Shown here piece after piece: positions 11,760 through 60,355 of a stretch of DNA of 64,000 bases (positions within the stretch are counted from its first letter, which is position 1; every line of letters starts with the position of its first letter). The stretch lies in IMG/VR virus record IMGVR_UViG_3300033153_015063, positions 1-64,000 of that record. The stretch is one strand, 5' to 3'. The position numbers and the translations under genes are program-made. The notes beneath the pieces were generated by a model that was not told the DNA's origin, did not search any database, and saw nothing but the letters and a program-made list of their open reading frames with translations.

Positions 11760-13721
11760 TTACACTTCCACCTCAGCTTCGAGTGCGTGTAAGAAGATAA
11801 AATCACGGCGGTGGCTCGGGTCCGTACCCATCAACTCCTCGAAAGCATTGGCCGTTGCCTCTTCATCCTCTATCTTGACCTGTATCAGAGTTCTACTATC
11901 AGGGTCCATCGTGGTTTCCCATAACTGGTCTGAGTTCATCTCACCCAGACCTTTGTATCGTTGAATCTCCATCTTACCAGTCCTGGTCAGCATCTTCTCA
12001 ACTACCTGTTCCTTCTCTTCCTCATTTATAACGTAGACAACTGAACGGCCCTTCGTTATTTTGTAGAGTGGAGGGCAAGCAACGAACACATGACCCTCTC
12101 TTATAAGAGTTGGGAGATATCTGAAAAAGAAGGTTAGTATAAGTATCTGGATATGGGCCCCATCTTCATCAGCATCACACATTATTATTATACGATTATA
12201 TCTGAGGTCATCATAATTGAAAATGCCAGTCAACTCGATCCCTGTCCCTATTACAGAAATCATCGACTGTATTTCACGGTTCTTCAGCACCTGACCCACG
12301 TCTACCTTCTCGACATTCCGCACTTTTCCTCGAAGAGGAAGAATTGCCTGTGTACGTCTGTCACGACCCTGTTTTGCCGTCCCACCGGCCGAGTTACCCT
12401 CTACTATGAACAACTCACACTCATCAGTATTCCGTGATGAACATGGTACGAACGATCCCTGGCTTTTCGGTAAGCCTCGCCTCTTACCTTTAGTTGCTTC
12501 TCTGGCCCTCTTGGCAGCCTCACGGGCCTTCCTCGAAGTGATTGCCCTTTCCACTATCAGCTTCGACTCTCGGATGTTTTTATCCAACCACTTCGACAGG
12601 TGCTCAGATACGACGTTATCAACTATTTTTCTGACCTCGGCGTTACCCAATCTGTACTTGGTCTGACCCATGAACTCTGGCTCAGGGACCTTCAAGGATA
12701 TTATTGATACGAGACCTTCTCTCACGTCTTCACCGCTGAGGGAACCATTCTTGTTGAGTCCGTGCTTCTCCGAGAATGAATTGATGGTCCTGGTGAAAGC
12801 AGACCTGAACCCCGCTGCGTGGGTTCCGCCTTCGATGGTTGGGATATTGTTGACGAAGGAAAGGAAGGTCTCACCATCGGCATAAGTATAGTAGAAGCCA
12901 ATCTCCACCAGCACTTCATCCCTGGTCTGGGAAATATACTCTGGTTTGTGGTGAATGGCACTCTTGTTACCTTTCAATTTCAAAACATAATCTTTCAAAC
13001 CACCTTTATGATGGTAGATAACCTCGTCCTCGTCGAGGTAGGTAAAGATGATAGCCAGACCGGGATTGAGATACGCCAGTTCATCACAGCGTTTTGAAAT
13101 CCTCTCCTCTGAAAATTTCCTAGGCCCGAACATCGTCTGGTCTGGCCTGAACCTGATAAGAGTTCCGGTCCCTCTCACCGGAACCTCCGTCAACTCCCTG
13201 GGTATCGAAGCATCCGTTAATTTCTTCGTGGTCGATTTGGTTAACGACAGCCGTGAAATTGGGGCATTAGCAACCCCCCGGGTGTATGACACCATCCAGA
13301 GCTTGTTTTGACGCCATACGTATGCTTCCAGGGTATCAGACAGGGCATTGGTCACCGACACCCCAACACCATGTAACCCACCAGAGACCTTGTAAGCACA
13401 CTTGTCAAACTTACCACCAGCATAGAGTGAGGTAAGAACCACCTCCAGGGCACTGGAACCACCGAACCTGGGGTCAGGATGCTTTCCAGTGGGGATACCC
13501 CTACCATTATCCTTGATGCTGACAAATCCACCTTTTTCAACGACTATGTTTATCTGGTCACAATAACCTGCGAGTGCCTCATCAATCGAGTTGTCGAGTA
13601 CCTCCCACAGCAGACGATGGAAACCACCTTCACCAACGTCATCAATGAACATGGCCGGACGTTTTCTGACTGCGTCAATACCATCAAGAGCTACGATGTC
13701 TTTGGCAGTATAACTTCCCAT
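11760..13721 (-). CDS. gyrB: Type IIA topoisomerase / DNA gyrase subunit B
   Basis: VRKRPAMF, EVLDNSIDE, DNGRGIP, SGGLHGVG, EGNSAGG, PLRGK, DADEDG, RYKGLGEM. Confidence 0.95.
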   Translation of the reverse strand: MGSYTAKDIVALDGIDAVRKRPAMFIDDVGEGGFHRLLWEVLDNSIDEALAGYCDQINIVVEKGGFVSIKDNGRGIPTGKHPDPRFGGSSALEVVLTSLYAGGKFDKCAYKVSGGLHGVGVSVTNALSDTLEAYVWRQNKLWMVSYTRGVANAPISRLSLTKSTTKKLTDASIPRELTEVPVRGTGTLIRFRPDQTMFGPRKFSEERISKRCDELAYLNPGLAIIFTYLDEDEVIYHHKGGLKDYVLKLKGNKSAIHHKPEYISQTRDEVLVEIGFYYTYADGETFLSFVNNIPTIEGGTHAAGFRSAFTRTINSFSEKHGLNKNGSLSGEDVREGLVSIISLKVPEPEFMGQTKYRLGNAEVRKIVDNVVSEHLSKWLDKNIRESKLIVERAITSRKAREAAKRAREATKGKRRGLPKSQGSFVPCSSRNTDECELFIVEGNSAGGTAKQGRDRRTQAILPLRGKVRNVEKVDVGQVLKNREIQSMISVIGTGIELTGIFNYDDLRYNRIIIMCDADEDGAHIQILILTFFFRYLPTLIREGHVFVACPPLYKITKGRSVVYVINEEEKEQVVEKMLTRTGKMEIQRYKGLGEMNSDQLWETTMDPDSRTLIQVKIEDEEATANAFEELMGTDPSHRRDFIFLHALEAEVEV

Positions 13722-24770: not shown

Positions 24771-25018
24771 GTTGCATTTTTCTATCAATTATAATCATCA
24801 GTGAAACTGACGAGAACCCCCTTATCAACTTCGGTTATAATGTTGCATTTTTCTATCAATTATAATCATCAGTGAAACGTTACGGACCTTTGTGCTAAAG
24901 AGGTTAAGGTCATTGTTGCATTTTTCTATCAATCATAATCCTCAGTGAAGCCCTCAGTATGTAGGGTGAGCTCAAGAAGGCTGGAGTGGTTGTATTTTTC
25001 TATCAATCGTAATCATCA
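24771..25018 (-). CRISPR. Satellite CRISPR array B: 4 repeats (one degenerate), 3 spacers
   Basis: 37-bp repeat at 24771, 24842, 24915, degenerate at 24989; spacers 34, 36, 37 bp. Confidence 0.9.
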
Positions 25019-25927
25019 AAAGTCCAGAACGCTGGTGTTTTTATCTGTTTCTTTGCTTATTAGATTTTTCCAGTCTTCAGGATTTTTCAGGAACGACCTA
25101 AAATCCAGACCTTCGAGTAGACCAAAGAACTGGTCGAAGTCGGGCTCGCCCTGGTCTGGGATGGTAATACCCTGCTGTTCGGGGTACTCAGGAACCAGTG
25201 GAAGAGTAATGAGCTCGATGTTCCGTTTGATGAGCTCGATGTTATCAGGTTCATTGACCCGGGCCATCACCCCTTTCAATCCATCAAACGGTAGTGCTTT
25301 GACGCTGATAACCTTCTTAGCTATCTTAATGGCCCTCTTCTTCCCAATACCATTGACACCATCAATGTTATCAGATGGGTCCCCCATCATCGCCTTCATA
25401 AAAAGGAACTGTTCTTTTATATCTCTATACTCATCCGGGTAGTCTTTGAAGTCGTCGATGGTGAAGGGTTCTTTCCCCCTTGGGTTCCAGATGGTAATAA
25501 CATCGTCCACGAGCTGACGGAAATCCCTATCTGATGATACAATGACAATATTATCCTCAATCTTATCACAATACATATCTGTCATAATTGCTATGACATC
25601 GTCAGCTTCAACATCAGGATACCGGAGGTGAGGAATACCCAGGGCGTCGAGAATCCTGGTGAATATCTCAATCTGAGCATAAAAGGTTTTTTCCATGTCA
25701 ACGGATCGGTTGGCCCTGCTACTGGTTTTTTTGTAAGTAGGGTGTATCTCCAACCTACGCTTACTGATACCACCATCAAACACATAAACAACATCATGTC
25801 CAGGGAATTTAGTGATGGTGTTACGGAACATAGCCAGCATCGAGAAGACGGTCCCGTTGGTGAGTTTTTGGCCCATCGTACTGTGGGCCATCCAGGCCTG
25901 GTTATTACCATCAAAGATGATTACCAT
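25016..25927 (-). CDS. 5'-3' exonuclease / flap endonuclease (Pol I N-domain type)
   Basis: FDGNN, VFDGG, YK, EADDVIA, SSDRDF, GDPSDNIDGVNGIGKKRA. Confidence 0.9.
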   Translation of the reverse strand: MVIIFDGNNQAWMAHSTMGQKLTNGTVFSMLAMFRNTITKFPGHDVVYVFDGGISKRRLEIHPTYKKTSSRANRSVDMEKTFYAQIEIFTRILDALGIPHLRYPDVEADDVIAIMTDMYCDKIEDNIVIVSSDRDFRQLVDDVITIWNPRGKEPFTIDDFKDYPDEYRDIKEQFLFMKAMMGDPSDNIDGVNGIGKKRAIKIAKKVISVKALPFDGLKGVMARVNEPDNIELIKRNIELITLPLVPEYPEQQGITIPDQGEPDFDQFFGLLEGLDFRSFLKNPEDWKNLISKETDKNTSVLDF

Positions 25928-26622: not shown

Positions 26623-27498
26623 TCAGAAATCCTCGGCTACATCGAATCTTTTCTTCTCCCGCATCTCCAGTGAATCTGCACGTTCTGTAAAGACAACATT
26701 CCCACCGACCTTCTCTCTGATAATAGTCCGTAGGTTCTTATCCACATCATAGCCTATCCCCTGCCGATCCAGGTCCCTGGCGACCGCCAACGTCGTCCCG
26801 GACCCGCAGAAAGGGTCCAGAACTACCTCGTTTTTGTGTGAAAACAGCGTTATCAGGCGAAAGGGTATCTCCGGGGGAAAGGCTGCGATATCCTCTTCTA
26901 AACGCCCCGGAATGGGCAAAACATTGGTGATGTCCCAGACGTTCAGATACCACTTCTCGGACTGGAACCGTTCCAGGTCAATCCCGGAGAGATTCTTCAG
27001 GTCCTTCGAGACCGCCTTGTGATTGTGCTTCCCCTTTTGCCAGATGAGAATAGATTCCTGGATGTTGTCGGGATAGTAGTACATGGGATATGGATGCTGC
27101 ACTACGACGCCAGAACGTCTACTGGTTCTGATGTACCCTTCGGGCTTTCTCCAGACGATACGGTCTCTGTAGATCCACTTCAGATCCGCCTGGTCATGCA
27201 GCTCCAGAGAAGAATTAATTATCGACCTGGTGTTCATCCACAAGTCAGATACGATGGGATACTTGACCCCATCTACTATGATATCGTCTATGACGATGCA
27301 GGCGATACGTCCCCTCTTCAGAACCCTGTGCATCTCCTTTAGGACCCGTGTCATAAACGAGAGATAGGTGCCATAGTTTTCGAAGAGACCTGGGTAGTCG
27401 AACGGAGCGTTGTAGTAAGGCGGAGAGGTCACAATGAGGTCCACACTCTCATCCTTGATTTCTTCCATGTTTTCACATGACCCAAAAATAACCTTCAT
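26623..27498 (-). CDS. N4/N6 DNA methyltransferase (beta class)
   Basis: TSPPY, AAFP, DPFCGSGTT. Confidence 0.9.
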   Translation of the reverse strand: MKVIFGSCENMEEIKDESVDLIVTSPPYYNAPFDYPGLFENYGTYLSFMTRVLKEMHRVLKRGRIACIVIDDIIVDGVKYPIVSDLWMNTRSIINSSLELHDQADLKWIYRDRIVWRKPEGYIRTSRRSGVVVQHPYPMYYYPDNIQESILIWQKGKHNHKAVSKDLKNLSGIDLERFQSEKWYLNVWDITNVLPIPGRLEEDIAAFPPEIPFRLITLFSHKNEVVLDPFCGSGTTLAVARDLDRQGIGYDVDKNLRTIIREKVGGNVVFTERADSLEMREKKRFDVAEDF

Positions 27499-28003: not shown

Positions 28004-28443
28004 GTTACATTTTTCTATCAGTCATCAATGGAACCGTTCTCCACAAGTCCCTATTGTTACATTTTTCTATCAATCATAATCCTCAGCGAAACGGACGTCT
28101 AACAATGAGTCGTAGAGAGTACAATGATCGTTGCATTTTTCTATCAATTATAATCCTCAGTGAAACATGGCATGGCTGTCGCTGAAGGGAGAGATGCTTA
28201 TTATAATCCTCAGTGAAACCAGTACAAAGTGAAGAAGAAGAGAGGCTTTTGCTGCTTCGTTGCATTTTTCTATCAATCATAATCCTCAGTGAAACAAAAT
28301 GCGTTGAGAGAGTTGGGGATACCATTTCGTATGTTGCATTTTTCTATCAATTATAATCCTCAGTGAAACTACTCCATGTTGACGGTCCACATCCAGGTAT
28401 TTGTGTGTTGCATTTTTCTATCAATCATAATCCTCAGTGAAAC
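28004..28443 (-). CRISPR. Main CRISPR array A: 7 repeats (one partial, distal ones degenerate), 6 spacers
   Basis: Repeat GTTTCACTGAGGATTATAATTGATAGAAAAATGCAAC (minus) at 28407, 28333, 28259, 28200 (partial), 28130, 28056, 28004; 3' ATGCAAC end as in Cas12f/Cas14 repeats. Confidence 0.95.
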
Positions 28444-28444
28444 C

Positions 28445-30166
28445 CTACTTTTTCACTCTATGTAGGGTCCCTTTCGCCTTTTTTAGGAGCTCAGTTGTCT
28501 GCTTCAACCTCTCCGTTCTGTTCTTAACTCTGTCGCTCATAATAAGGTCACGGTTTTCAACCAACACCCCGGCGAAATGAGCTGCGTTGGTAGCTGCGTT
28601 CCGGTCAGCGTTGAGTTGGCGGCCGCAGTCACCACATCTGAACCATGAGTGCCAGTGTTCCCAGAAGACGCCAGATTTCCCTACATCTCCATGTTTACCC
28701 CACCCACCACACACTGAACACCGTTTGCAAGCCAGCGTCAAAGGAATCTTCTGGATAACGATGTTGGGAATCTCTCTCAGCTTATATGTGAGTTGCCAAT
28801 CTACGATATGGAAAGGCCACCTATTGGCCATCCTCCTGATAAAGTCCGGTAGGAGTTCCTCCTCGCAACCTACCATGTTTTCCAATCTACCAGCTTTGTC
28901 CCTACTTCCGGTGAAATCGTGGATGCAGACCAGGATGTTCCCGCCGAGTTCTTTGAGTTTGTTGGCAATCATCCTGGTTGCGTTGTGTAGCTCGTGCCTT
29001 AGAACCAACGACGCTTTTGTGAGATAAATAGATGCCTTCTTATACTTGATAGAAAGGTTCTTTTTTGTTATCGGGCGTTGATCTTTTCCACGACGGGTTG
29101 CCTTGGATTGTCTTTCCGCATACTTATCGTCACTTGACTTCCAGTCACGAAGCATTTTCTTTCCTTTATGTATGTAATGAAACAACTCTCGGCCAGTTCT
29201 GGCATCCAACACAACCAACGACATTGGACGATAGATACCACCATGAACACCAACAATATAGTCTATTTCATCTTTTTTGTAATCATAAACGTCCACATCA
29301 ACGGATAGTGTGATGTGAAGCCACCACTTACCATCCTTTGGTATCAAAGTCCCTGAACCATGTTTCAGGATCGCTTCAAGTGTAAGCTCGCACCATCCCT
29401 CCTGATAGTGTTTCTTACCGAACTCTTTCAACACCCCGGATCGGTCCCTGATTTGTGATGACTCTACCTGGGCTGAAAAAATACCATTACGATTTATTAC
29501 TCCAACACTAAAGACAATCCCAAAATTATTACCGTTTTTCTTAATTTTGATGGACCTGTTATGCAGTTCAATAACATTATACTTTTCATAGCTTGGTCTG
29601 TTCTTGTTATTGACGGGTTTCCTTGGCCCTTTTTTGGTTGATGTTCTGTTCATAATCTCATCAACCAACTTTGTTTTAATATCTGGGATCTGTTTTCTGG
29701 CTATTTTAAGTAGGATTTTTCTATACTCTCCTATTTCCTTTTTGTATTTCTTATTTCCCTTTTTTCTGGGGTAAGCCGGTGGATTGGCTACTTGACTGGT
29801 CAACCATGGCCACCATAACTTATATTTGTTGAGTAGAACATAGCTATCGGTACGCCAGAGACGGCTTATCCAATTGGACAATGAGGAACGAAAGTTGGCC
29901 AGAACAACCGATACCTGTTCCTGAACAGTAGTTGATGAAAGTAGTGTGGTATTGATTTTCTGATCTTTATTAATTCCTTGAGAAAGACGTAGAATATGTG
30001 GCGGGAGTTTAGGAGACTTAGGAATCTTACTGCCTTTGTAGTAAGATGGTATCATAATTGATGCATAGTCAGCTACATCTCTGGCCTGCCCAAGGGCCAC
30101 AAACAGACGTTCAGAGTCCTCTTTCTTGAACGTCAATGGGACCTGGATTGTTCTGATTGATTTCAT
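28445..30166 (-). CDS. cas12: Type V Cas12f-like effector with non-canonical, probably inactive RuvC
   Basis: IRTIQVPL N-terminus, RuvC-I VGVHGG, RuvC-II CIHDF, Zn finger CSVC...CGDC, RuvC-III NADRNAA; array starts 2 nt after stop. Confidence 0.85.
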   Translation of the reverse strand: MKSIRTIQVPLTFKKEDSERLFVALGQARDVADYASIMIPSYYKGSKIPKSPKLPPHILRLSQGINKDQKINTTLLSSTTVQEQVSVVLANFRSSLSNWISRLWRTDSYVLLNKYKLWWPWLTSQVANPPAYPRKKGNKKYKKEIGEYRKILLKIARKQIPDIKTKLVDEIMNRTSTKKGPRKPVNNKNRPSYEKYNVIELHNRSIKIKKNGNNFGIVFSVGVINRNGIFSAQVESSQIRDRSGVLKEFGKKHYQEGWCELTLEAILKHGSGTLIPKDGKWWLHITLSVDVDVYDYKKDEIDYIVGVHGGIYRPMSLVVLDARTGRELFHYIHKGKKMLRDWKSSDDKYAERQSKATRRGKDQRPITKKNLSIKYKKASIYLTKASLVLRHELHNATRMIANKLKELGGNILVCIHDFTGSRDKAGRLENMVGCEEELLPDFIRRMANRWPFHIVDWQLTYKLREIPNIVIQKIPLTLACKRCSVCGGWGKHGDVGKSGVFWEHWHSWFRCGDCGRQLNADRNAATNAAHFAGVLVENRDLIMSDRVKNRTERLKQTTELLKKAKGTLHRVKK

Positions 30167-30179
30167 GTGACAGTAAGTG

Positions 30180-30420
30180 TGGGGGGCAAAAGCCCCCCTT
30201 GATAGATTTCGACCGCCCCGCACTTTTCCCCTAACTCCGAAGAGATTGGTGACTTATGTACAGTTGGATAGCAGTACTCTGGGCCCAAACTGATGCACAG
30301 CCTGGGGGAACATACAACAGTCCCTGTTACCGGCGGTACGCAACCCCGGATTTCCGGTCTGGGAATCGAACCCAGCCTGGTTGGCCCAATTGACAACCAG
30401 TTCCAACATCCGAACATCTG
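30180..30420 (-). ncRNA. Putative tracrRNA
   Basis: TATA at 30443-30450; hairpin CCAGGCUG-UGCAU-CAGUUUGG whose loop pairs with repeat AUGCA; UCUAUCAA (30199-30206) pairs with repeat UUGAUAGA; terminal GGGGGGC-UUUU-GCCCCCC hairpin. Confidence 0.75.
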
Positions 30421-30452
30421 GTACTTGATAGCGAGGAATGTGTTTATAAACA

Positions 30453-30749
30453 TTACGTGTCAACTCTCTCAACCGATACCTTCATTTTATAACCCTCGCC
30501 AGCATCCTCACTGACCTTTGAACCATAGGCAAAGCACATCTCAAGGAGGTCTTCATCAGGCCAGCAGAGTATGAACTTCTCATCTACGTTCTCCCACCAG
30601 GCCCAGTATGTGTCATCTACATCATGGTTTTCGGTCAATCGGTATTTTCCAATCTCACCAGAAGAAACCATCTCAACCTGGTGTTTGTAAAGGTAGAAGT
30701 GTCGAGGGCCCTTCTCAGTCTCAAGAGCAAACATCTCACTACTTCTCAT
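30453..30749 (-). CDS. Hypothetical protein
   Basis: Operon member. Confidence 0.5.
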   Translation of the reverse strand: MRSSEMFALETEKGPRHFYLYKHQVEMVSSGEIGKYRLTENHDVDDTYWAWWENVDEKFILCWPDEDLLEMCFAYGSKVSEDAGEGYKMKVSVERVDT

Positions 30750-32136: not shown

Positions 32137-32925
32137 CTAAAATTCCAGTACGTCATAGTTATTGAAGAACCTCTCAAAGTCAGGATTCACCTCATACCCG
32201 ATAGACCTACGGCCCATCCGTCGTGCAACTCTGGTTGTTGTGCCAGTCCCGAGAAAAGGGTCCATCACTACCTCGGTAAGATAGGAAAAGCCCCTGATGA
32301 TACGTATTGGGATCTCCTTTGGAAAAGGGGCAGGATGGTCACGGTTTCCACTTGGAGCTGGCTTTATCTTCCAGACCGAGCTCTTCTTTATCTCCACCCA
32401 CTGGTCCTTACTGAGCTTCGAGGCTTCCTTTATCTCGCCAGAGAGATGAGATAGGTCACGCTTCCCAGATTTCTCAAATTCAAGGATAAATTCATGCATG
32501 AAATTGATTGGAAGGGCCCCTGGATAGGGGTAAGATCCGATAGGAGACTGAACAGAATTGGCCTTCTCCCAGATGATCTCTCGCTTGAACGCAAACCCCA
32601 ACCCCACACAATCGTCGATGGTCCAGCCGACCAGATTGATGGAGTGGAACAATTGCTTATCAGAGGCCGGGACAGGCAGGTTCATCAGATTGACAAACAT
32701 CTTACGCCCAGGGGCAAGTACACGGAGGCACTCTTTCCATACGTCTCTCATTTTGAGACGCCATGAATCTGGATTGGTCGTGTTACCGAGGTCGTCTGGT
32801 AGATTTGAGTATTTCTTTGCGTTGTAGTATGGCGGGCTGGTCACCACGAGATGAACAGAACAATCATCCACCTCGGACATATCCCTCGAATCTCTGACGT
32901 GATAGATAGGCTCAAAAAACTCCAT
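32137..32925 (-). CDS. N4/N6 DNA methyltransferase (beta class)
   Basis: TSPPY, HPAPFP, DPFLGTGTT. Confidence 0.9.
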   Translation of the reverse strand: MEFFEPIYHVRDSRDMSEVDDCSVHLVVTSPPYYNAKKYSNLPDDLGNTTNPDSWRLKMRDVWKECLRVLAPGRKMFVNLMNLPVPASDKQLFHSINLVGWTIDDCVGLGFAFKREIIWEKANSVQSPIGSYPYPGALPINFMHEFILEFEKSGKRDLSHLSGEIKEASKLSKDQWVEIKKSSVWKIKPAPSGNRDHPAPFPKEIPIRIIRGFSYLTEVVMDPFLGTGTTTRVARRMGRRSIGYEVNPDFERFFNNYDVLEF

Positions 32926-33289
32926 CTGTCTCACTGTGATAATCACATTCCCGTGAACAATATTCATCATCGTCGTAACAGAGTTTGTTGCATCCATTCC
33001 CCTGACATCTACCAGTAGGTTCGAAATCTTCTTCTTCTGTATCTATGTAGTCGATGATTGGGCATAACCACTGGTTGGCAGTTGGGTCAACTATCTCGCC
33101 ATCTGGAGTAGTAAGCCACCAATGATCTTCCAGTAGTTTTGGTCGGGCGGCTAGGGTAACAAAACCACTACAGAGTCTGAGTTCAGGAAAGATATCGTTC
33201 ATCTCTATACAGAGTTCTTTACACCTGTTAATCTTTTTTTCAAGTGTCGTTTTCTCAATCCACTCTTCGTAGATAGGTGACAAACTCAT
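32912..33289 (-). CDS. Hypothetical protein
   Basis: C...HWW...DPT pattern; upstream promoter box. Confidence 0.5.
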   Translation of the reverse strand: MSLSPIYEEWIEKTTLEKKINRCKELCIEMNDIFPELRLCSGFVTLAARPKLLEDHWWLTTPDGEIVDPTANQWLCPIIDYIDTEEEDFEPTGRCQGNGCNKLCYDDDEYCSRECDYHSETDGVF

Positions 33290-34827: not shown

Positions 34828-35550
34828 TCATCGAGTCTTGTCTGAGTTAGCAGATTGAAAAAGTAACTCATCAAAACACTCATCTTCAAATTCAAATCTC
34901 AGTTGTGCTTCTTTCTCCTGTATGTCCATAACCCTACCATGCTTTTCTTTCACAAGTTTTTTTCCACAAGTTGGGCAAAAAAACATTTTATATTCATCAC
35001 CAAGATAGTTGGTATATTTGGTCTTTACATCCTCAAAAACAAGAACGCAGTCTCTACAGAATAATACAATTTCGTTTTTGATATCCTCAGTTTGGCACTC
35101 GCTGCAGAGAAGATTCTCGTTGACATCACAGTATTTACAATAAGTATCGTAGCCACCGCCACACCCACCACATCTTGGGCATATTGGTGGTGGGATTAGT
35201 TTTTCAGCACATATATCACAGGTATCTTCATCACACTCGCTGCAGAGAAATAAATGTGGGTTATGTGCATCAATACTGCAAATTTTACAAAAATCCTCTA
35301 TTTTGATTTTGCGGTTACATCTTCTACAGGTTGTGGTTAGTGTAATCAATATCTCTTCACAATGAAAGGAACAACTCTCGATATTCTTATTGTAGCGTAA
35401 CGAAGGTTTTTGATTATCGGTTTCCGGTTCCGGGTAGTATCTTCGAGCTGTTCTGATATTTCCACATTGAACATCTTGTGTACCATCATCCTTCATCGGG
35501 ACTTTTTCAGCCGGTGCTTGTGTATGGTTGGGGTCCGGTACGATAGCCAT
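34828..35550 (-). CDS. Cys-rich multi-Zn-finger protein
   Basis: Many CxxC; internal LCSEC duplication. Confidence 0.6.
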   Translation of the reverse strand: MAIVPDPNHTQAPAEKVPMKDDGTQDVQCGNIRTARRYYPEPETDNQKPSLRYNKNIESCSFHCEEILITLTTTCRRCNRKIKIEDFCKICSIDAHNPHLFLCSECDEDTCDICAEKLIPPPICPRCGGCGGGYDTYCKYCDVNENLLCSECQTEDIKNEIVLFCRDCVLVFEDVKTKYTNYLGDEYKMFFCPTCGKKLVKEKHGRVMDIQEKEAQLRFEFEDECFDELLFQSANSDKTR

Positions 35551-35815: not shown

Positions 35816-37084
35816 TCAGAAATCCATCACATCGCTTTTTACCATGATACTACCATCTTCGTCTATAGGAACCATTTCGCCTATCCTTTTCATAGCAATG
35901 TCATAGTAACGTTTTTCCCTCTCAAAACCAATATAATCCCTACCACATCTGGCTGCTGCGATAGCTGTAGTGCCCGACCCCATGAATGGGTCCAGGATGA
36001 TACCTCCACTTGGAGTTGCTGTGAGTCTGCAAAGATATTCTATCAACTCCAATGGTTTTACAGTTTCATGGTCGTTGTACTCACATCGTTCTGACCTCGA
36101 TGCTTTAGCACAGTAAAAAAATCTTGAAGGTCGGTCATCATTACCAACCTCATTGTCCAATAAATTACCTACATCCTCATCCAATATGAGATTGGCCGGA
36201 TAACGCCCTTTTGGATTATGGCGTTCCTCACCTAGATTTCGTGGTGGGGTCTTACCTTTACCCCATATCCCAGCACCAGGGACACTGGTCCTCCGTTCGC
36301 TATCTAGAACCTTACTCTCTATCCTCGCACCGTCGATGTTCAATCCGGCCACACCCCATTTCAAAGCATTCTCAACAAAGGTTCCATCGAGAGGTTTCAT
36401 AGCAACGAGGATGGTTTCCCATGCTGGTTTGAGTGAACTCCTCCAACCATCCCATATCTTTGCCTCCTCAGTCGCTGGAGTGGTAATATTGATCTCTCGT
36501 CTGCCAGCTTTCCAACCACCAGGAGCTTCATAGCCGCCATCCTTCTGGTTGATAAATATCCTTGCTCGCTTTTCATCGACACCAACGACCTCCCTCTCGG
36601 CTCCGGCGGCCTTGTCAATTCCCTTCGAGATATCGGTTCCCTTACCCCAACCCGACCCATACAACCACATCATTGTATCTCTAATTATCCATCCAGCATC
36701 CTCGATGGCACAGGCCAACCGATGCCAAGTTCTGGTACCAGAAAAAGCGAGAAAGAAAGCTCCTGGTTTTGCTACTCTTAAAGCCTCTACGGACCACTTA
36801 TAGTGCCACTCGTAAAGTTTTTGCATTTGTTTAATATGATTATGAGAACCGCCAAATTTTGGTGATGGTAAGTGCCTCGGCCATTTAATTCGCCTTTCTC
36901 CTATACCTGGTTTTTGAAATGGCTGAACGTCGCCTTCTTTCCAAGGCGAGTCCCACTCTGACATAAACGATAATCCATAAGGTGGATCTGTGATGATGGT
37001 ATCAATGCAATTATCAGGAAGATGCACAGGCATACCAACCAGGCAATCCTCGTTGTAGATGATGTCGGTTTCAATCTCGTCCAT
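35816..37084 (-). CDS. N4/N6 DNA methyltransferase (intact paralogue of split gene)
   Basis: TDPPY, GRYPAN, HETVKP, DPFMGSGTT. Confidence 0.9.
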   Translation of the reverse strand: MDEIETDIIYNEDCLVGMPVHLPDNCIDTIITDPPYGLSFMSEWDSPWKEGDVQPFQKPGIGERRIKWPRHLPSPKFGGSHNHIKQMQKLYEWHYKWSVEALRVAKPGAFFLAFSGTRTWHRLACAIEDAGWIIRDTMMWLYGSGWGKGTDISKGIDKAAGAEREVVGVDEKRARIFINQKDGGYEAPGGWKAGRREINITTPATEEAKIWDGWRSSLKPAWETILVAMKPLDGTFVENALKWGVAGLNIDGARIESKVLDSERRTSVPGAGIWGKGKTPPRNLGEERHNPKGRYPANLILDEDVGNLLDNEVGNDDRPSRFFYCAKASRSERCEYNDHETVKPLELIEYLCRLTATPSGGIILDPFMGSGTTAIAAARCGRDYIGFEREKRYYDIAMKRIGEMVPIDEDGSIMVKSDVMDF

Positions 37085-37096
37085 CTCGTTTCACCC

Positions 37097-38326
37097 TCAG
37101 AAATCCATCACGCTACTATCTCTCAACAAACCTTCGGTCTCGGCCCTGTCTATAGCCATCCTCACGTACTTCTCTGAAGTATCGCACCCCAACCAATCCC
37201 TACCCTCCTGGGTAGATACAACGGCTGTGGTCCCACTTCCCATGAAAGGGTCGAGAACGACACCGTCCGATGGGCAACATGCCTTGATGATTGGCCTGAT
37301 GAGCTCCTGTGGAAACACGGCATGATGGGCCTGCTTGAAGGGTTTGGTATTCTGTAAGATTGATACCACCCCATTCTCATCGTCCAATGCCCCATACTTC
37401 CCCATGTCATATCTGGCAGTAGATAACTCGTGTAGTAGTGTCTCCAGATTCTCTATGATGACGTCAATGGAATCTGAGTACCAGTCAATGGTTCTACGGT
37501 AGTGCCCCTGTTCTCTGATTGCTTCCCGATCATAGTAGTAGGATTCCTGCTTCGTGAGTACAAGGAAATATTCGTGTGCGATAGTAGGGCGATCCTTGGC
37601 GGATTCTGGCCGGATATTCCATTTCAACCATGGTACGACGGCCCGCCAATACCACCCAGCAGCCTGGAGAGACATTGCCAGACGCCAGGGGATACCAACC
37701 AAATCCTTCGGTTTTACACCCTCTGGGACCCTCACGGACATCCAGTTACCAACGTCCCCTACCTTCCCATCGACCTGTCCCCATGTCCTGTTTGCAGCGT
37801 ATGTATCACCGATATTCAGCCACAGAGACCCGGTGTCTTTGAGTACCCGCCAGTATTTCCCGAACACTGACGTCAGGTTGGAAACGTAGATGTTGGGTTC
37901 TGGTTCCAGACCAAGATGCCCCTTCCAAGCATCACACCATTTACAGTAGTATGACGTATATCCCTCGCCTCTGATGACACTCTCGCTCATCACCCGGTTC
38001 GCACCTACAGAAGAAGGTCGGTCAGGGTGGTTTTTACCACCCCTCGCAGGTGTAAAATGTTCCATCCACTCATGGGTACATTCATAGGGTTCCAAATCGT
38101 AACATTCTTTGTTCTGGGGATGGTAACAAAGTAACTCTTCACCATCACTGACCTGTTTACATTGCGGGCATCTCCGAAACCTTTTCCCACCCCACACCTC
38201 GGCTTTACCTAGATACTCTCTCAACATCCAGAATGGTGGTGATGTGACTATCAGGTCTACTATCCCATCTGGTAGAGTGTCGGCATACTCCATCGTATTC
38301 GATAAAGCGACTGTGTTGAGTGCCAC
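37097..38326 (-). CDS. N4/N6 DNA methyltransferase with Cys-rich insert
   Basis: TSPPF, HHAVFP, DPFMGSGTT; GTG start 30 nt after TTTATAAA. Confidence 0.88.
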   Translation of the reverse strand: MALNTVALSNTMEYADTLPDGIVDLIVTSPPFWMLREYLGKAEVWGGKRFRRCPQCKQVSDGEELLCYHPQNKECYDLEPYECTHEWMEHFTPARGGKNHPDRPSSVGANRVMSESVIRGEGYTSYYCKWCDAWKGHLGLEPEPNIYVSNLTSVFGKYWRVLKDTGSLWLNIGDTYAANRTWGQVDGKVGDVGNWMSVRVPEGVKPKDLVGIPWRLAMSLQAAGWYWRAVVPWLKWNIRPESAKDRPTIAHEYFLVLTKQESYYYDREAIREQGHYRRTIDWYSDSIDVIIENLETLLHELSTARYDMGKYGALDDENGVVSILQNTKPFKQAHHAVFPQELIRPIIKACCPSDGVVLDPFMGSGTTAVVSTQEGRDWLGCDTSEKYVRMAIDRAETEGLLRDSSVMDF

Positions 38327-38396
38327 TATCGAGAAATGGCCGCCCGTCTTTATAAAGAGTTTGAAAGCGTTCTGGAACTCCTTCATTTCCAGAACT

Positions 38397-38568
38397 CATT
38401 TTTCTATCAATCATAATTCTCAGTGAAACTGGCACAACGTCAATACTACCGTTCTACAACGACATTTGTTGCATTTTTCTATCAATTATAATCCTCAGTG
38501 AAACAAGGTGGGGTGGGCAAGACACTAAACCATCTATCTGTTTATGCTTTATGCCAGTTGCATTTTCT
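38397..38568 (-). CRISPR. Satellite CRISPR array C: 2 repeats plus a remnant
   Basis: Repeats at 38397-38429 and 38468-38504, 38-bp spacer; GTTGCATTTTCT remnant at 38557. Confidence 0.8.
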
Positions 38569-38589
38569 GGGTGTGAACATGTTATTAAT

Positions 38590-44114: not shown

Positions 44115-46145
44115 CTACTTCTTACTTGGACAGTTCATATCAAGACACATATTCCAGGGTTGCTTCCCTTTTGTCTTGATTACAACCTTCGGCGTGTTGC
44201 ACGACACACAGATTGCCCCGGTAACCTTGATATCACCCTGCCCGGGGAGTGGAAAGGTCCTGCTACAACCTGGATAACCCGAACATCCCACAAACCTTTT
44301 TCCCTTCCTGGAACGGCGTATTTTCAGGTCCTTCCCACAATCAGGGCATGGACCAACCACTTCACCGGATTGCTGAGCCCCAGATCCCATTTTTTTACTG
44401 ATTTCAGGTGTCCTCTTCAGCAACCCATCAATGATTTTATCCAGATTGTCTCTAGAGACAGTCAACACTTTATCTTTCGTGTTCTGACCATCGGCAATCA
44501 TGTCCATGTCAACTTCCAACTCCTTTGTCATGGTAGGTTTACTGATACCAGGTGCAAAGTCCATCAGGAGTTCCGCCAGTGCCATTCCATCTTGAGTTGG
44601 TCGGATATTCCCCTCGACATACCCACGATTGTAGAGCTTTGAGATGATTTCTGCTCTTGTAGATTTGGTACCAAGACCTTCGTTCTGCATCACCGAAACC
44701 AATGTGCCCTGTGAGAACCTGGAAGGTGGTTGGGTAGTTTTTTCTATTAATATTATAGTATTAACAGGTATCTTCTCATCCAATTTTAAGGAAGGCAAGT
44801 GGTTTGGTGGACTCCATCCATATTGATACACGTCTCTCCATCCCATCTCAATAATCCTTGAACCAACAGTAATAAAAAATTCTCCATCAATATCGAGTTC
44901 TACTTTAGTATATTCGTAGACGTAGTTTGGCATCAGCGTCGCCAGGAAGCGTCTGACAATGATATCAAACAGTTCGCTTTCGTCACCATTCATTGACCCG
45001 AAGAGACCAGTTGGATGGATAGGTGGATGGTCAGTGGTCTGTATCTTACCTTTACTCGGTCTTATCTTCGGGAGTCCGAGAACTACGCCGGCAGCATCAT
45101 AGATAGAACTGGTTGTGGGATACTCATTGAAGAACGACATTGTAATGTTCTTCAGACCGATACCTATTGGATAAACAGTATTGTCAGTACGTGGATATGA
45201 ACATATTCCTTTGAGATAGATGCTCTCGGACACATCCAATACCTTCTTGGCGTTCCAACCCAACACCCCAGTTGCCAGTCTGACCAATTCGGTTGTATCG
45301 AGTGGTGGTGGTGCCCATGCTTCCTGTCTCGTGGTGTCAACGTCGGATACCACGGCCTGTTTCGAACTCTCGATTCTGGTAAATATGTCTCTGGCTACTT
45401 TTTTATCGGTAAACTTACCTTCTGTGTGCCAGGCATCGAAGTTGCGGTTCTTGGTCAGATTCGCCTTGATTTTCCAGTATGGTGTTGGTTTGAAGTTCAG
45501 TATCTTCTTCTCACGTTCAACGATGAGGCATAGCGTCGGACTCTGGACCCTACCGACAGAGAGAAAACCTTTCCCCCTTCGTCCAGTCGACAGAGAGAAA
45601 AACCTGGTCAGAACAGCACCCCACACCAGGTCCACGAACTGGCGGGTTTCCCCCGCTGACGCCAGATTGTAGTCGAGACCGACGAGGTTCTTGAAAGCCC
45701 TTATCACCTCGATATTTGTCAAAGATGAAAATTGAGCTCTTTCGATAGAGACTCTGGGTCCTACCATCTTCACGATGTCGATAGCCTCCTTACCGATAAG
45801 CTCTCCTTCACGGTCATAGTCAGTGGCCACTATAATTTTATTCACTTTCTTCCCCAACATCTTCAGAGTCGCCACAATCTCTTTTTCAGAAGGTATCACA
45901 ATCGGGTTGGCATAGATGACATCCTTCAGATTCCCCAACTCCCAACTCTTGTATTTCTGAGGATACTCAACCTTCACGATATGCCCACGCAGACCAACGA
46001 TGTAGATGGTGTCGTTGCCATCATCATACGAGAAGTAGTAGATTGCACCATTCTTTCTGGTGATGTATCTGTTGCTGGGGGAGAGTATGTAAGCCAGCCT
46101 CTTCGCAGCTTTGGATTTCTCTGCTATGACCAGAGTATCTACCAT
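44115..46145 (-). CDS. topA: DNA topoisomerase I (type IA, archaeal-like)
   Basis: IAEK, ATDYDREGE, GRVQSPTL, SYPRTD, GLGTKSTR, C-terminal Zn ribbons. Confidence 0.95.
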   Translation of the reverse strand: MVDTLVIAEKSKAAKRLAYILSPSNRYITRKNGAIYYFSYDDGNDTIYIVGLRGHIVKVEYPQKYKSWELGNLKDVIYANPIVIPSEKEIVATLKMLGKKVNKIIVATDYDREGELIGKEAIDIVKMVGPRVSIERAQFSSLTNIEVIRAFKNLVGLDYNLASAGETRQFVDLVWGAVLTRFFSLSTGRRGKGFLSVGRVQSPTLCLIVEREKKILNFKPTPYWKIKANLTKNRNFDAWHTEGKFTDKKVARDIFTRIESSKQAVVSDVDTTRQEAWAPPPLDTTELVRLATGVLGWNAKKVLDVSESIYLKGICSYPRTDNTVYPIGIGLKNITMSFFNEYPTTSSIYDAAGVVLGLPKIRPSKGKIQTTDHPPIHPTGLFGSMNGDESELFDIIVRRFLATLMPNYVYEYTKVELDIDGEFFITVGSRIIEMGWRDVYQYGWSPPNHLPSLKLDEKIPVNTIILIEKTTQPPSRFSQGTLVSVMQNEGLGTKSTRAEIISKLYNRGYVEGNIRPTQDGMALAELLMDFAPGISKPTMTKELEVDMDMIADGQNTKDKVLTVSRDNLDKIIDGLLKRTPEISKKMGSGAQQSGEVVGPCPDCGKDLKIRRSRKGKRFVGCSGYPGCSRTFPLPGQGDIKVTGAICVSCNTPKVVIKTKGKQPWNMCLDMNCPSKK

Positions 46146-51823: not shown

Positions 51824-53297
51824 ATGACCATAGTCGAAATCCCCCCAGGTTCAGGGAATAAATACAGGTACGTTTACGAACAATCAAGTCAGGACACTGT
51901 CTACAAGGGGCCAGTAGGCCAGGCCCCGGAACTGGGAGACCTATGTAGTTGGTGGTGCGGTCCGGGACCTCGTGATGGGTCGGGAACCGAAGGACTACGA
52001 TATTGCAACATCAGCTACTCCCGGAGAGATAAAGGACATCTTCGGAGACGAAGTGGCCAAGACAATCGGTGGTGACGTTCACGGGACTGTCCTTATCAAA
52101 GACCCCCGTCGGGGAGGACGAGAACCGATGGAGGTTACGACGTTCAGAAAAGAAACCTATGGTGAGGCGGGCCGAGGTAGAAGGCCCACAGATGTAGAGT
52201 GGACCCGTTCGCTTGAAGAGGATCTCGGGCGTCGGGATTTTACTATCAACGCCATGGCCATGAAGACCGATGGAACTGTCATAGACCCCTACAACGGTAT
52301 TTCTGACATCAAAGCAGGTGTTATCCGGGCGGTGGGGAACCCAGACCTACGTTTCGATGAAGACCGTCTCAGGATGCTTCGGGCTGTCCGTTTCGCCAGC
52401 AGGTTTGGGTTCGATATCGAATCGGGCACAAAAAATTCGATCCAGAGAAACAAAGACAGCATCAACGAGTTACGGGCTGACGGACAACGTGTTGTGTCAT
52501 GGGAACGTATCAGAGGTGAGTATGACAAGGGTTTCTCACAACAGATGTTTGAGGCTGCCGCTGAGGTAGGGTTACTCGATGAAACCATACCAGAGGTCGC
52601 TGACCTGATTGGCTTTGAACAACGGAACCCCTGGCACTATGGCGACGTCTACGCACATACGATGGATGTGGTCAATGAGGGTATGAAGATGGAAGCACCG
52701 AAGGAGGTTAGGTGGGCATCTCTTCTCCATGATGTTGGTAAGATACAAACACGAACCATCGAAGAAAAGGAAGGCCAACAGATACATCGCTTCTTTGGGC
52801 ACGACAAGGTATCGGCTACGATGTCAGACGAGATACTGACCAAACTCAAATTCCCCAATGATGAGAAGGAATACATCAAGCTTCTGGTCTCGAAGCACAT
52901 GGTTCAACTGCCAGACGTCGATGACCCAGGTTTTGGTCGGGCGGTGGACCGATGGGAACGGAGGCTACAAGCAAAAGTGAAGAAGAACCCCAACAAATAC
53001 AAACCCAGGGTTGCAGGGGACCTGTTGATGCTTCGTAAGGCCGATGCCCTTGCCCATGTCGGTGGCGTCGAACTGGCTACCAATGTTGATGCGGTCCAGA
53101 GACACCGAGAGAACAGACAACCTGTGGTCGAGGTCAAACCAGTCCTGAGTGGCAAAGACCTGATAAACATGGGCTATGACCCTGGACCCAGGTTCAAGGA
53201 TATATTACAGTCTCTTACAGATTGGGAAGATGACCTTGGTTACAGACCAACGAAAGAGATGGCCCAGACCTTCATTGAAGAGAATTATGGTGAATGA
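51824..53297 (+). CDS. cca: VEIPPGSG module (copy 9) joined out of frame to class II CCA-adding enzyme with HD domain
   Basis: Module from ATG 51824; YVVGGAVRD, DYDIAT, RRDFTINA, EDRLRMLRAVRF, LLHDVGK in the +1 frame from about 51930. Confidence 0.85.
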
Positions 53298-57976: not shown

Positions 57977-60355
57977 TTAGTAGATAGTAAGCCCTTGGAC
58001 CTTTTTCTTCGCAATATATACGTATAGAATTTTTCCATCTACCAACTTCTGGCCACCTCGCTTAATCTCCTCAGCCTTCTTTAACACTACAGATCCATCT
58101 TCTTTAAAGAGATAAACTTCATCGTCGGGTCCTATGCCCCATACCCCGATAAGTTTTTTCTTCTGTGCTTGTGGTACTATTTCAAGTACCTTACCGACCA
58201 ATCCCCTGTTCCTATCTGAAATCTCTTCAATAGGACATTTCCTCCCCCACCCAGTTGTGGAGACCATCAACACCTCTTCACGTTCCGATACAACCGACGC
58301 CCCCCGGCACTCTGTATCAACCTTGATTCCCCTCACACCAACACCATCCCTGTTCGTAGGCCTTATATCTCCAATTGGATAAGATACGTATCTGGCAATT
58401 TCATCAACGTGGATAATCCGTGTATCATCACCTGGGAACCTACCGAATCCATACGACAGATCCGCATCTATAAGGAAATCTCCATATCTGATAGTCAACA
58501 TCTTGGTACTGGCCCGATTGCTGTTCAATGAAGATAACTTGATTGCTTTGACTTTTCCTGATCGTAGAAAGAAATAAACTTTTCTATCATCGAACTCCTC
58601 TATGGCCATAACCTTTCTGAAAATCTCTTCGCCACAAACCTTCAATATCTCATGGAACGGAGTTCCTTTCCCTTTTTCACTCAGAGGTATGTCCCATGCC
58701 TTTACCCGGTGAGCTCTATCATCGGTAAAGAAAAGGATTGTATCGTGAGATGAACACTGTACCATATCCACCAATCCCTTCCCCTGGGTTTTCTTTTTCC
58801 GCCAACTTGACAGATAGTCTTTTTTTATCCCATCAGACGTTAATGATATAATTATATCACGATCTTTTACCATGTCTGATTTTTCCACATCCACCGGTTT
58901 TTTAATCAAACTCGATCTTCTGGACGATGTAAACACGTCCCTCATGTTATTGATTTCATCTACTATAAGCCTCAATATTTTCTTATCATCGGATACTGTA
59001 ATGGAAAGTGCTTTGATATCGACTGAAAGTTCTTTGACCTTCTCCTCCAACTCATCAACCTCGAATCTCGCCAACCTTTTGAGAGACATTTGCATCACGG
59101 CTTTTGCTTGTGTCTCACTGAAACCCATCTCGACCAATGAATAGATCAACTCCTTATCGGTTGTGCAGACCTTCACCTTCTCTATGATGGTGTCGATGAT
59201 AGGAAGTGCCTTCATCAACCCAACCTTGATATTGTAATCATAGGTTTTCTTTTCGAGTTCAAACTCTACCCGACGCTGGACCACCGACATCCTGTGTTCG
59301 ATCCACCGCTGAAACAGGTGGTAAAGAGAGACCTCTATCGGTATCCCACCATCCAGTACAAGGTTGAGATACGAGTACGTCTGGTCAAGTGATGTCCTTT
59401 TCAGTATCTGGTTCCTCACAACCTGAGGTTCGTCTCCCCGTTTGACCTCGATGACTATACGAAGTGTGTCACTACTCTCATCACTGTAATCTGCAATACC
59501 AGAGTTTTTCTCCTCAGCCAACTTCTCCAGTTGCCCGAACAGTTTCTCCTTTGTAAGGTTGTAAGGTAGTTCTGTGATGATGACCCTGTTCTTTTCCGTC
59601 CTGATTTTAGCTCTGACGTGAAACGAACCTCGGCCTGTCTCAAAAATCTTCCGAAAGTCCCCATAGACCTCACCACCTGTAGGAAAATCCGGGCCACGCA
59701 TGAACATCATATAACCATTCACAGCCTCAGAAACCCGCTGTTTTTCGTCGCTCAACGACGCTAGACCATCCATGTTATGGATATGCCAGACCGCTGCGGT
59801 TATCACTTCCTGGATGTTGTGTGGATACATCCTGGTCGCCATCCCAACAGCAATCCCTTCGGTCCCATTGATAATTAGATTAGGAACCATCGCCCCGAGT
59901 ACCGTGGGTTCTTTGAGAGACCCATCAAAGTTAGGAATGAAATCGACGTACTGGTTATCAGTATCTTCGAGTAGGTACAAGGAATATTTTGAAAGGGTAG
60001 CTTCGGTGTATCTCATTGAAGCTGGTGCATCTGGGTCATTGGAACCGAAGTTACCCTGACCTATCACCATAGGCTCCCTGACTTGCCAGTCCTGTGCCAT
60101 CCTCACCATAGTAGAGTAAACGGACTGGTCACCGTGTGGATGCCACTTTCCCATCACATCTCCAACGATACGAGCTGACTTGACAGGTTTTCCGCCCGGT
60201 TTCAGACCCAACTCCATCATCGCCCATAGAATACGCCGTTGGGCCGGTTTCAGCCCATCTCTGACATCTGGTAGGGCCCTGACCAGAGAAATCATCGAGT
60301 AATCAAGTAGGTTCTTTTGGAGAAGGTCGATGATGTCCCTACCATTTATAGACAC
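57977..60355 (-). CDS. gyrA: Type IIA topoisomerase / DNA gyrase subunit A
   Basis: [29 protein letters not shown] catalytic Tyr, GPDFPTGG, C-terminal pinwheel-like repeats. Confidence 0.93.

Follow-up and report, generated by a model that had tools for sequence, protein, structure and literature searches.

In Cas12f guide RNAs, the first repeat:anti-repeat duplex takes the form of a pseudoknot and the second corresponds to stem 5 (PMC10097598), and the guides of Cas12f1 enzymes are described as combining a long anti-repeat with a short one of 5-7 bp (PMC11246509). The scaffold of Un1Cas12f1 (Cas14a1, type V-F1) carries the hairpin GGCUG-CUUGCAU-CAGCC, and its repeat ends in AAUGCAAC (bioRxiv 10.1101/2022.10.20.513037). 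Nuclease-dead Cas12f homologs are truncated and use single guides without a tracrRNA (PMC13472631). Among more distant systems, the TnpB of IS200/IS605 elements works with an omega-RNA whose scaffold extends over the gene's 3' end and the transposon right end, with a single guide and no array, and extrachromosomal elements of Methanoperedens carry TnpB-like genes beside CRISPR arrays, with mini-arrays in viruses, in a system thought to target rival elements. The adaptation genes cas1, cas2, and cas4 are found in V-F1 loci but not throughout type V-F.

The locus described here lies in the first 64 kb (the window) of a 242,596-bp IMG/VR virus genome with direct terminal repeats, and its features are collected in Table 1. 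Judging by sequence comparison, a minus-strand interval directly upstream of the effector gene very probably encodes a tracrRNA, serving a virus-borne CRISPR system that is Cas12f-like (type V-F-like) and very divergent. A tracrRNA is in itself an expected component of a Cas12f-like system; what sets this system apart is a predicted tracrRNA that forms the leader of the cas mRNA and has a tRNA-like 5' module, together with the rare His-His-Asp effector family and the dispersed crRNA units. With type V-F the locus shares a Cas12f/TnpB fold, an adjacent co-directional array, and, as read from sequence, a two-part anti-repeat, while neither the canonical RuvC triad nor Cas1 or Cas4 domains were found. 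The main weight for the tracrRNA reading comes from related loci and not from the window alone.

Table 1. Coordinates of the predicted tracrRNA, the effector gene, and the repeat units of the virus (window positions unless marked as genome positions).
Feature	Position	Strand	Description
TATA-type promoter box of the tracr-cas unit	30443-30450	-	TTTATAAA; conserved as TTTATAAACA in L001
Predicted tracrRNA (5' leader of cas transcript)	30181-30420	-	Covarying helices; non-coding
tRNA-like 5' module	30349-30418	-	Stem 30418-30410/30357-30349; long hairpin 30400-30377; T-arm 30375-30359
Conserved helix 1	30330-30349	-	30349-30344 with 30335-30330; RNAalifold
Family-conserved pseudoknot hairpin (predicted)	30307-30324	-	GGGAC-UGUUGUAU-GUUCC
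Inserted hairpin	30284-30306	-	9-bp stem; loop UGCAU (30297-30293) complementary to repeat AUGCA
Conserved long-range helix 3 and enclosed region	30218-30263	-	30263-30258 with 30223-30218
Long anti-repeat (predicted)	30199-30206	-	UCUAUCAA; complements repeat UUGAUAGA, repeat positions -18 to -11
Terminal GC hairpin	30181-30198	-	GGGGGGC-UUUU-GCCCCCC; 7 bp, UUUU loop; 14 nt before cas ATG
Cas12f-like effector gene, P0001	28445-30166	-	ATG at 30166; stop codon 28447-28445; 573 aa
Main CRISPR array	28004-28443	-	37-nt repeats, 37-nt spacers; repeats degenerate at far end
Second array	24771-25020	-	4 units; repeat identical to that of main array
Mini-array	38393-38570	-	Partial unit, full repeat, and degenerate terminal repeat; main-array repeat
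Mini-array outside window	genome 208059-207888	-	Main-array repeat
Solitary repeat 3' half outside window	genome 145663-145680	+	Main-array repeat

The effector has a single Pfam match, to the Cas12f1-like TNB domain (PF07282, E = 6.9e-8). A word search returned one relative, P0002, at 62% identity, and an exhaustive profile search of 1.84 billion representative proteins returned four clear ones, P0002 to P0005. The family thus numbers five distinct members among 1.84 billion representatives and is very rare. Peptide and DNA-pattern scans of IMG/VR found no further relatives, nor were any present in GTDB genomes or GenBank phages; of two metagenome scans, the first found none and the second only another copy of the L004 element. 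When a profile of the five sequences was compared with the PDB, it matched CnCas12f1 (8HR5, 1.6e-8) and Un1Cas12f1 (7L48/7C7L, 3e-7). The AlphaFold model of the effector has a mean pLDDT of 67, and the top 11 Foldseek matches to this model are all Cas12f (E down to 3e-12). Pfam, the PDB profile search, and the predicted fold therefore agree in identifying the effector as Cas12f-like. A weak TNB match at 159.9 kb of the genome was considered as a second effector and rejected, as it covers a zinc ribbon only.

The active site of this family departs from the canonical RuvC Asp-Glu-Asp triad, with two of the three carboxylates replaced. An hhalign comparison with a canonical TnpB-like protein (probability 99.2) places H308 at the RuvC-I Asp and H416 at the RuvC-II Glu, while the RuvC-III residue D521 is kept; H308 is also aligned with D326 of Un1Cas12f1 in the family-profile match. 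The His-His-Asp combination is invariant in all five members, within the motifs GVHGGIYRP, CIHDFTG, and NADRNAA, and the C-terminus of the effector retains RuvC-III and the zinc ribbon in full. With His-His-Asp at the RuvC site, the complex may still cut DNA, perhaps through a different metal chemistry, or may be limited to binding it. Since two of the three carboxylates are missing, the system may differ in behavior from characterized Cas12f enzymes.

Comparison with described effectors shows likeness and disparity in each case. AsCas12f, CnCas12f1, OsCas12f, and SpCas12f1, for which sgRNA complexes have been solved, provide the best structural matches (Foldseek E = 3e-12 to 1e-10), with 8HR5 the best match by sequence, and their guides likewise contain two anti-repeats, one long and one short, together with a pseudoknot. 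Their identity to the window effector is only 12-14%, however, and the latter is longer (573 aa versus ~420-500) and lacks the canonical triad. The dCas12f proteins (dCas12f-sigmaE and array-associated dCas12f) and TldR are also derived from Cas12f or TnpB, have an altered RuvC, and act by RNA-guided DNA binding, but they are C-terminally truncated, use a single guide without a tracrRNA, and have sigmaE or HTH neighbors in bacteria. The window effector is full length, with invariant His replacements, a predicted tracrRNA, and arrays, and no Sigma70_r2 domain was found in the virus. Of the traits that mark dCas12f and TldR, only the altered RuvC is common to both. The Methanoperedens elements resemble this locus in placing a Cas12f/TnpB-like effector and arrays on a mobile element, here too probably archaeal. 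They differ in that their cleavage residues are reported to be conserved and no tracrRNA has been described for them, and none of the searches detected homology to the window family.

A homologous non-coding leader is present at all five loci of the effector family, the relatives being represented by contigs L001, L003, L004-L007/L018, and L008, of which L004 is known from marine-sediment samples. In the virus genome it occurs as a single copy; the gene upstream of it stops at 30455-30453, and 286 non-coding bases separate that stop from the cas gene. Window and L001 leaders are 76% identical, compared with 62-65% for the proteins, and are separated by indels of 28, 2, and 1 nt, which excludes a protein-coding leader. 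The two open reading frames that overlap it (30163-30453 and 30254-30472) were rejected as genes on the basis of these frame-breaking indels.

An alignment of the five loci yields a consensus structure of four helices and 26 pairs, in which 85% of cells are paired and 10 pairs are changed on both sides. None of 500 shuffles reached its score, which falls far lower when the 3' partner is slid by 1-3 columns. Both-side changes affect four of the eight pairs of helix 1 across the five loci and three of the six pairs of helix 3, where 90% of cells are paired. Several conserved G-U pairs, including those of helix 3, are compatible with the minus strand only. The stem of the terminal GC hairpin is invariant in the window, L001, and L003, and different GC-rich hairpins occupy this position in L004 and L008. 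Stability of the whole-leader fold does not exceed that of shuffled sequences (z = -1.2). The covariation, drawn from five sequences of which those of the window and L001 are closely related, supports a conserved structured RNA on the minus strand but falls short of proof. The sequence-only reading had placed a tracrRNA on this strand upstream of the cas gene, and the retention of the leader with compensatory changes at five of five loci supports this.

The minus-strand repeat of the window is 37 nt long (GUUUCACUGAGGAUUAURAUUGAUAGAAAAAUGCAAC), with UUGAUAGA inside it and AAUGCAAC at its 3' end. Each array-bearing locus has its own repeat, and at all four of these loci two leader segments, an anti-repeat of 8-9 nt and a loop hexamer, match the cognate repeat only. 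In the window, UCUAUCAA is complementary to UUGAUAGA, as previously proposed, with a duplex energy of -8.8 kcal/mol, and the loop hexamer GUUGUA (30318-30313) complements UGCAAC, the 3'-terminal hexamer of the repeat, with one G-U pair. In L001 the anti-repeat UUCCAUCAA corresponds to repeat UUGAUGGAA and the hexamer GUUGCA to the repeat end UGCAAC; in L003, AAACAUCC corresponds to GGAUGUUU and GUCGCU to AGCGAC; and in L004, UAGCAUCCC corresponds to GGGAUGCUA and GUCGCA to UGCGAC. The L008 contig has no array, and its hexamer is GUUGCA. The position of the anti-repeat is homologous across loci, directly before the 3'-terminal GC hairpin, and the hexamer lies throughout in a hairpin of 5-6 bp with a loop of 7-8 nt. 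The earlier proposal of a two-part anti-repeat is thus upheld by the change of both segments with the cognate repeat in four loci.

To assess chance expectation, the 254-nt leader was put through 2000 dinucleotide shuffles. Watson-Crick complementarity of 8 bp to the repeat arose in 1.5% of window-leader shuffles, whereas a match of at least 6 bp to the repeat 3' end, G-U pairs allowed, arose in 42%, so that the loop complementarity alone is not significant; its chance level is 12-45% of shuffles. Both matches in the right order were obtained in 0.55% of window shuffles, and in 0.1-0.55% per locus. Two other candidate repeat-pairing sites were rejected: GUUGCGU (30344-30338) is not conserved, and CUAUCAA (30431-30425) is likewise not conserved and lies upstream of the predicted transcription start.

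Two hairpins of this leader could provide the pseudoknot loop, and they compete for the same repeat bases. The sequence-only reading had assigned this role to a hairpin with loop UGCAU. That hairpin is present, its arms CCAGGCUG and CAGUUUGG (30305-30298/30292-30285, two G-U pairs) being extended by a ninth pair, 30306/30284, where eight had been counted, and its loop complementarity to the repeat stands. It is, however, a 28-nt insertion seen in the window only and missing from L001, L003, L004, and L008, and the loop conserved in the family is that of the adjacent hairpin. The four other loci use the homolog of 30324-30307, with perfect cognate covariation.

Conversely, the UGCAU loop is predicted to be 99.9% unpaired, while the conserved hexamer is fully unpaired with a probability of 0.003. 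In this virus the match of the conserved loop includes one G-U pair, the stem below the loop is weak, and folding predicts the loop to be mostly inaccessible. The duplex energies with the repeat are similar, at -5.1 kcal/mol for the inserted loop and -5.5 kcal/mol for the conserved one. The inserted hairpin has a strong stem, resembles the pseudoknot hairpin of Un1Cas12f1, and would pair in the same register; within the tracrRNA reading, it may well have taken over the pseudoknot here, the ancestral loop having decayed. The thermodynamic prediction of loop accessibility leaves the protein out. With the comparison of loci supporting the conserved loop, and accessibility and likeness to Un1Cas12f1 supporting the inserted one, we lean slightly towards the conserved loop.

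With Un1Cas12f1 the arrangement has much in common. In both, a loop would pair with the repeat 3' end just before the guide and a separate short duplex would form further 5' in the repeat, and the scaffold elements follow the order pseudoknot hairpin, stem, anti-repeat. The presence of a pseudoknot plus a second duplex in Un1Cas12f1, to which the earlier reading had pointed, agrees with the published descriptions (PMC10097598, PMC11246509). The window repeat has the same terminal octamer, AAUGCAAC, and the inserted hairpin resembles GGCUG-CUUGCAU-CAGCC, although these are short motifs compared by eye. The order of the leader sites, with an anti-repeat for the inner part of the repeat and a loop hexamer for its end, corresponds to that of stem 5 and the pseudoknot in Cas12f guides. 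Unlike Un1Cas12f1, the predicted scaffold of the window makes up the 5' leader of the cas mRNA, with a GC hairpin at its end, the RuvC residues are His-His-Asp, and Cas1 and Cas4 were not found. The protein match to Un1Cas12f1 is confined to the TNB/RuvC-III region (family profile, E = 3e-7), and the register of the conserved pseudoknot is off by 1 nt (last 6 nt of the window repeat versus -7 to -2 in Un1Cas12f1).

Transcription of the unit can be related to the promoters of the virus as a whole. A virus-wide motif, (GAAC)TCTTTAWAWAC, precedes 66 of 280 ORFs, with its start 31-28 nt ahead of the ATG, and Shine-Dalgarno-like motifs peak at -15 to -6 in virus ORFs. Examples in the window are found upstream of ORFs 25016-25927, 34828-35550, and 44115-46145. 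The TATA box proposed earlier for the leader is present and fits this motif, as does its L001 counterpart TTTATAAACA, and it predicts a transcription start at about 30420-30419, near the position that had been assumed. The GC hairpin noted just before the cas start was also found; its role as a terminator was ruled out, as no U-tract follows it and a terminator scan reports none there. No promoter motif precedes the array, and the effector stop codon and the main array are separated by 1 nt. With no room for a second promoter and no U-tract terminator, a single transcript covering tracrRNA, cas gene, and array is the simplest reading, and we infer one primary transcript of this kind, together with any processing. 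No terminator or processing site lies between the scaffold and the cas ORF, which makes a free trans-acting RNA an assumption of the model.

In the mechanism that we propose, transcription directed by the TATA box would begin near 30420, cross the tracr scaffold and then the cas ORF, and continue into the array. The scaffold would base-pair with the final 18-20 nt of each repeat, and also with solitary repeat halves elsewhere in the genome, the anti-repeat engaging repeat positions -18 to -11 and the loop hexamer the last 6 nt before the guide. Either the conserved or the inserted loop would serve as the pseudoknot partner in this virus, and the effector would bind the resulting composite dual guide RNA.

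The 5' part of the leader has a distinct character. Folded alone, segment 30418-30349 adopts a tRNA-like shape as its minimum-energy fold, with a T-arm loop of UUCGAUU; the tRNA-like parts are the acceptor-like stem and the T-arm only. The module shows compensatory changes in L001, is represented by an acceptor and T-arm minihelix in L004, and is absent in L003 and L008. ARAGORN reports no tRNA in it, and its score against the Rfam tRNA-Sec model, 14.5 bits, is below the gathering score of 47. The module may act as a signal for tRNA-processing enzymes that sets the 5' end of the tracrRNA.

At the other end of the L001 leader, a degenerate copy of the repeat 3' module (L001 1109-1128, ending in AAAAUGCAAC) follows the tracr GC hairpin and precedes the cas ATG, which puts the 5' end of the cas gene where a guide would be. 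This copy, poorly matched to the anti-repeat, may be a remnant or may act as a natural single guide.

The leader is contiguous with the cas ORF, ends 14 nt from its ATG, and is followed by neither a terminator nor a second promoter, as would also be expected of a structured cis-acting 5' UTR controlling stability or translation without pairing to repeats in trans. We regard this as improbable, since it leaves unexplained both the tracking of the cognate repeat by two leader segments in four loci and the finding that the conserved unit of the repeat is exactly the part that pairs. It is a little more improbable still that the RNA is a TnpB-type omega-RNA or a natural single guide, in which the scaffold is fused to one guide, instead of a dual tracrRNA/crRNA. 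Such an RNA would suit a TnpB-related effector, the single guides of nuclease-dead Cas12f homologs, and the repeat-like module of L001, but the scaffold is located upstream of the gene and not across its 3' end, four loci have multi-spacer arrays after the gene, and the window itself has no repeat module after the scaffold, that of L001 being poorly matched.

Chance complementarity in an interval without RNA function deserves least credence of all. The 8-mer and 5-mer matches are individually weak and the fold of the leader is no more stable than that of its shuffles, yet chance would have to account for a leader better conserved than the proteins, for covarying helices, and for matches restricted to the cognate repeat in four loci. 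A tracrRNA with a two-part anti-repeat remains the reading that we favor.

The arrays of the virus and its relatives bear on how such an RNA would be used. In the window, as in L001, L003, and L004, the array lies beside the effector gene in the same transcription direction. One unit of the main array (28226-28207, minus strand) retains only the first 20 nt of the repeat, without the 3' half that would pair with the tracrRNA, so the sequence downstream of it should give no usable guide. Conversely, copies of the repeat 3' module outnumber those of the 5' part by 33:16 in L003 and 15:5 in L004, such that the over-copied part (about two to three times the 5' part) is exactly the tracr-pairing one. 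Arrays at L003 4137-6300, at L004 7900-8760, and in L018 are crowded with units retaining only the last 15-19 nt of the repeat. L004 and L018 are two assemblies of one element and differ in spacer and array content, indicating that the arrays turn over.

Including the units outside the window, there are ~15 potential guides in the whole virus. The solitary plus-strand unit has a canonical TATA motif ~30 nt upstream of it and runs antisense into the 3' end of ORF 145684-146745. Searches for spacer targets returned nothing beyond matches of 12-18 nt in the virus's own genome or related loci, and none in GenBank phages. A search with the 19-nt repeat module gave single scattered matches in bacterial MAGs and two virus contigs, at about chance level and without arrays. 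Cas1 and Cas4, the adaptation domains included in the search, were not found in the 242.6-kb genome.

A TATA element set at constant spacing ahead of leaderless start codons is the archaeal pattern, and we infer from the virus-wide motif that the promoters have an archaeal-type BRE/TATA architecture with leaderless mRNAs, and that the host is probably archaeal. As searches of the virus genome gave no sigma-70 (Sigma70_r2), TFIIB, HK97 capsid, or terminase domain, the promoter architecture is the one indicator of host domain. If the host is archaeal, a 243-kb genome is large for a virus of archaea.

A more speculative and, taken as a whole, unlikely scenario would join these features in a giant virus with archaeal-type promoters and a Cas12f-derived effector all its own, in which the RuvC site has been remodeled into an invariant His-His-Asp and which either binds DNA programmably or cuts it through non-canonical metal chemistry. 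Its ~15 crRNA units would be scattered, some with promoters of their own, and its tracrRNA would be a cas mRNA leader matured by tRNA-processing enzymes at the tRNA-like module. The case, a large virus, probably of archaea, with its own effector, predicted tracrRNA, and dispersed crRNA genes but with Cas1 and Cas4 not found, bears on the use of CRISPR by viruses against hosts or rivals. The combination of a Cas12f RNA architecture with a His-His-Asp RuvC makes the effector family a natural test of whether DNA cutting is retained or has given way to binding-only control. For a family with five public members, the analysis supplies a guide design at sequence level (scaffold, two pairing segments, and minimal repeat module) that is directly testable.

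The surroundings of the locus show some further features. Four N6/N4 DNA methylase genes flank it on the minus strand (26623-27498, 32137-32997, 35816-37084, and 37097-38386), the last of which starts within the degenerate terminal repeat of the mini-array (38386-38429, minus strand), where AAAAAUGAG replaces AAAAAUGCAAC. The virus also encodes gyrase B and A, a type IA topoisomerase, a CCA-adding/poly(A) polymerase-like enzyme, a 5'-3' exonuclease, a GmrSD-like nuclease, and a family B DNA polymerase, the coordinates listed together for the non-methylase genes being 11760-13721, 57977-60355, 44115-46145, and 51972-53297.
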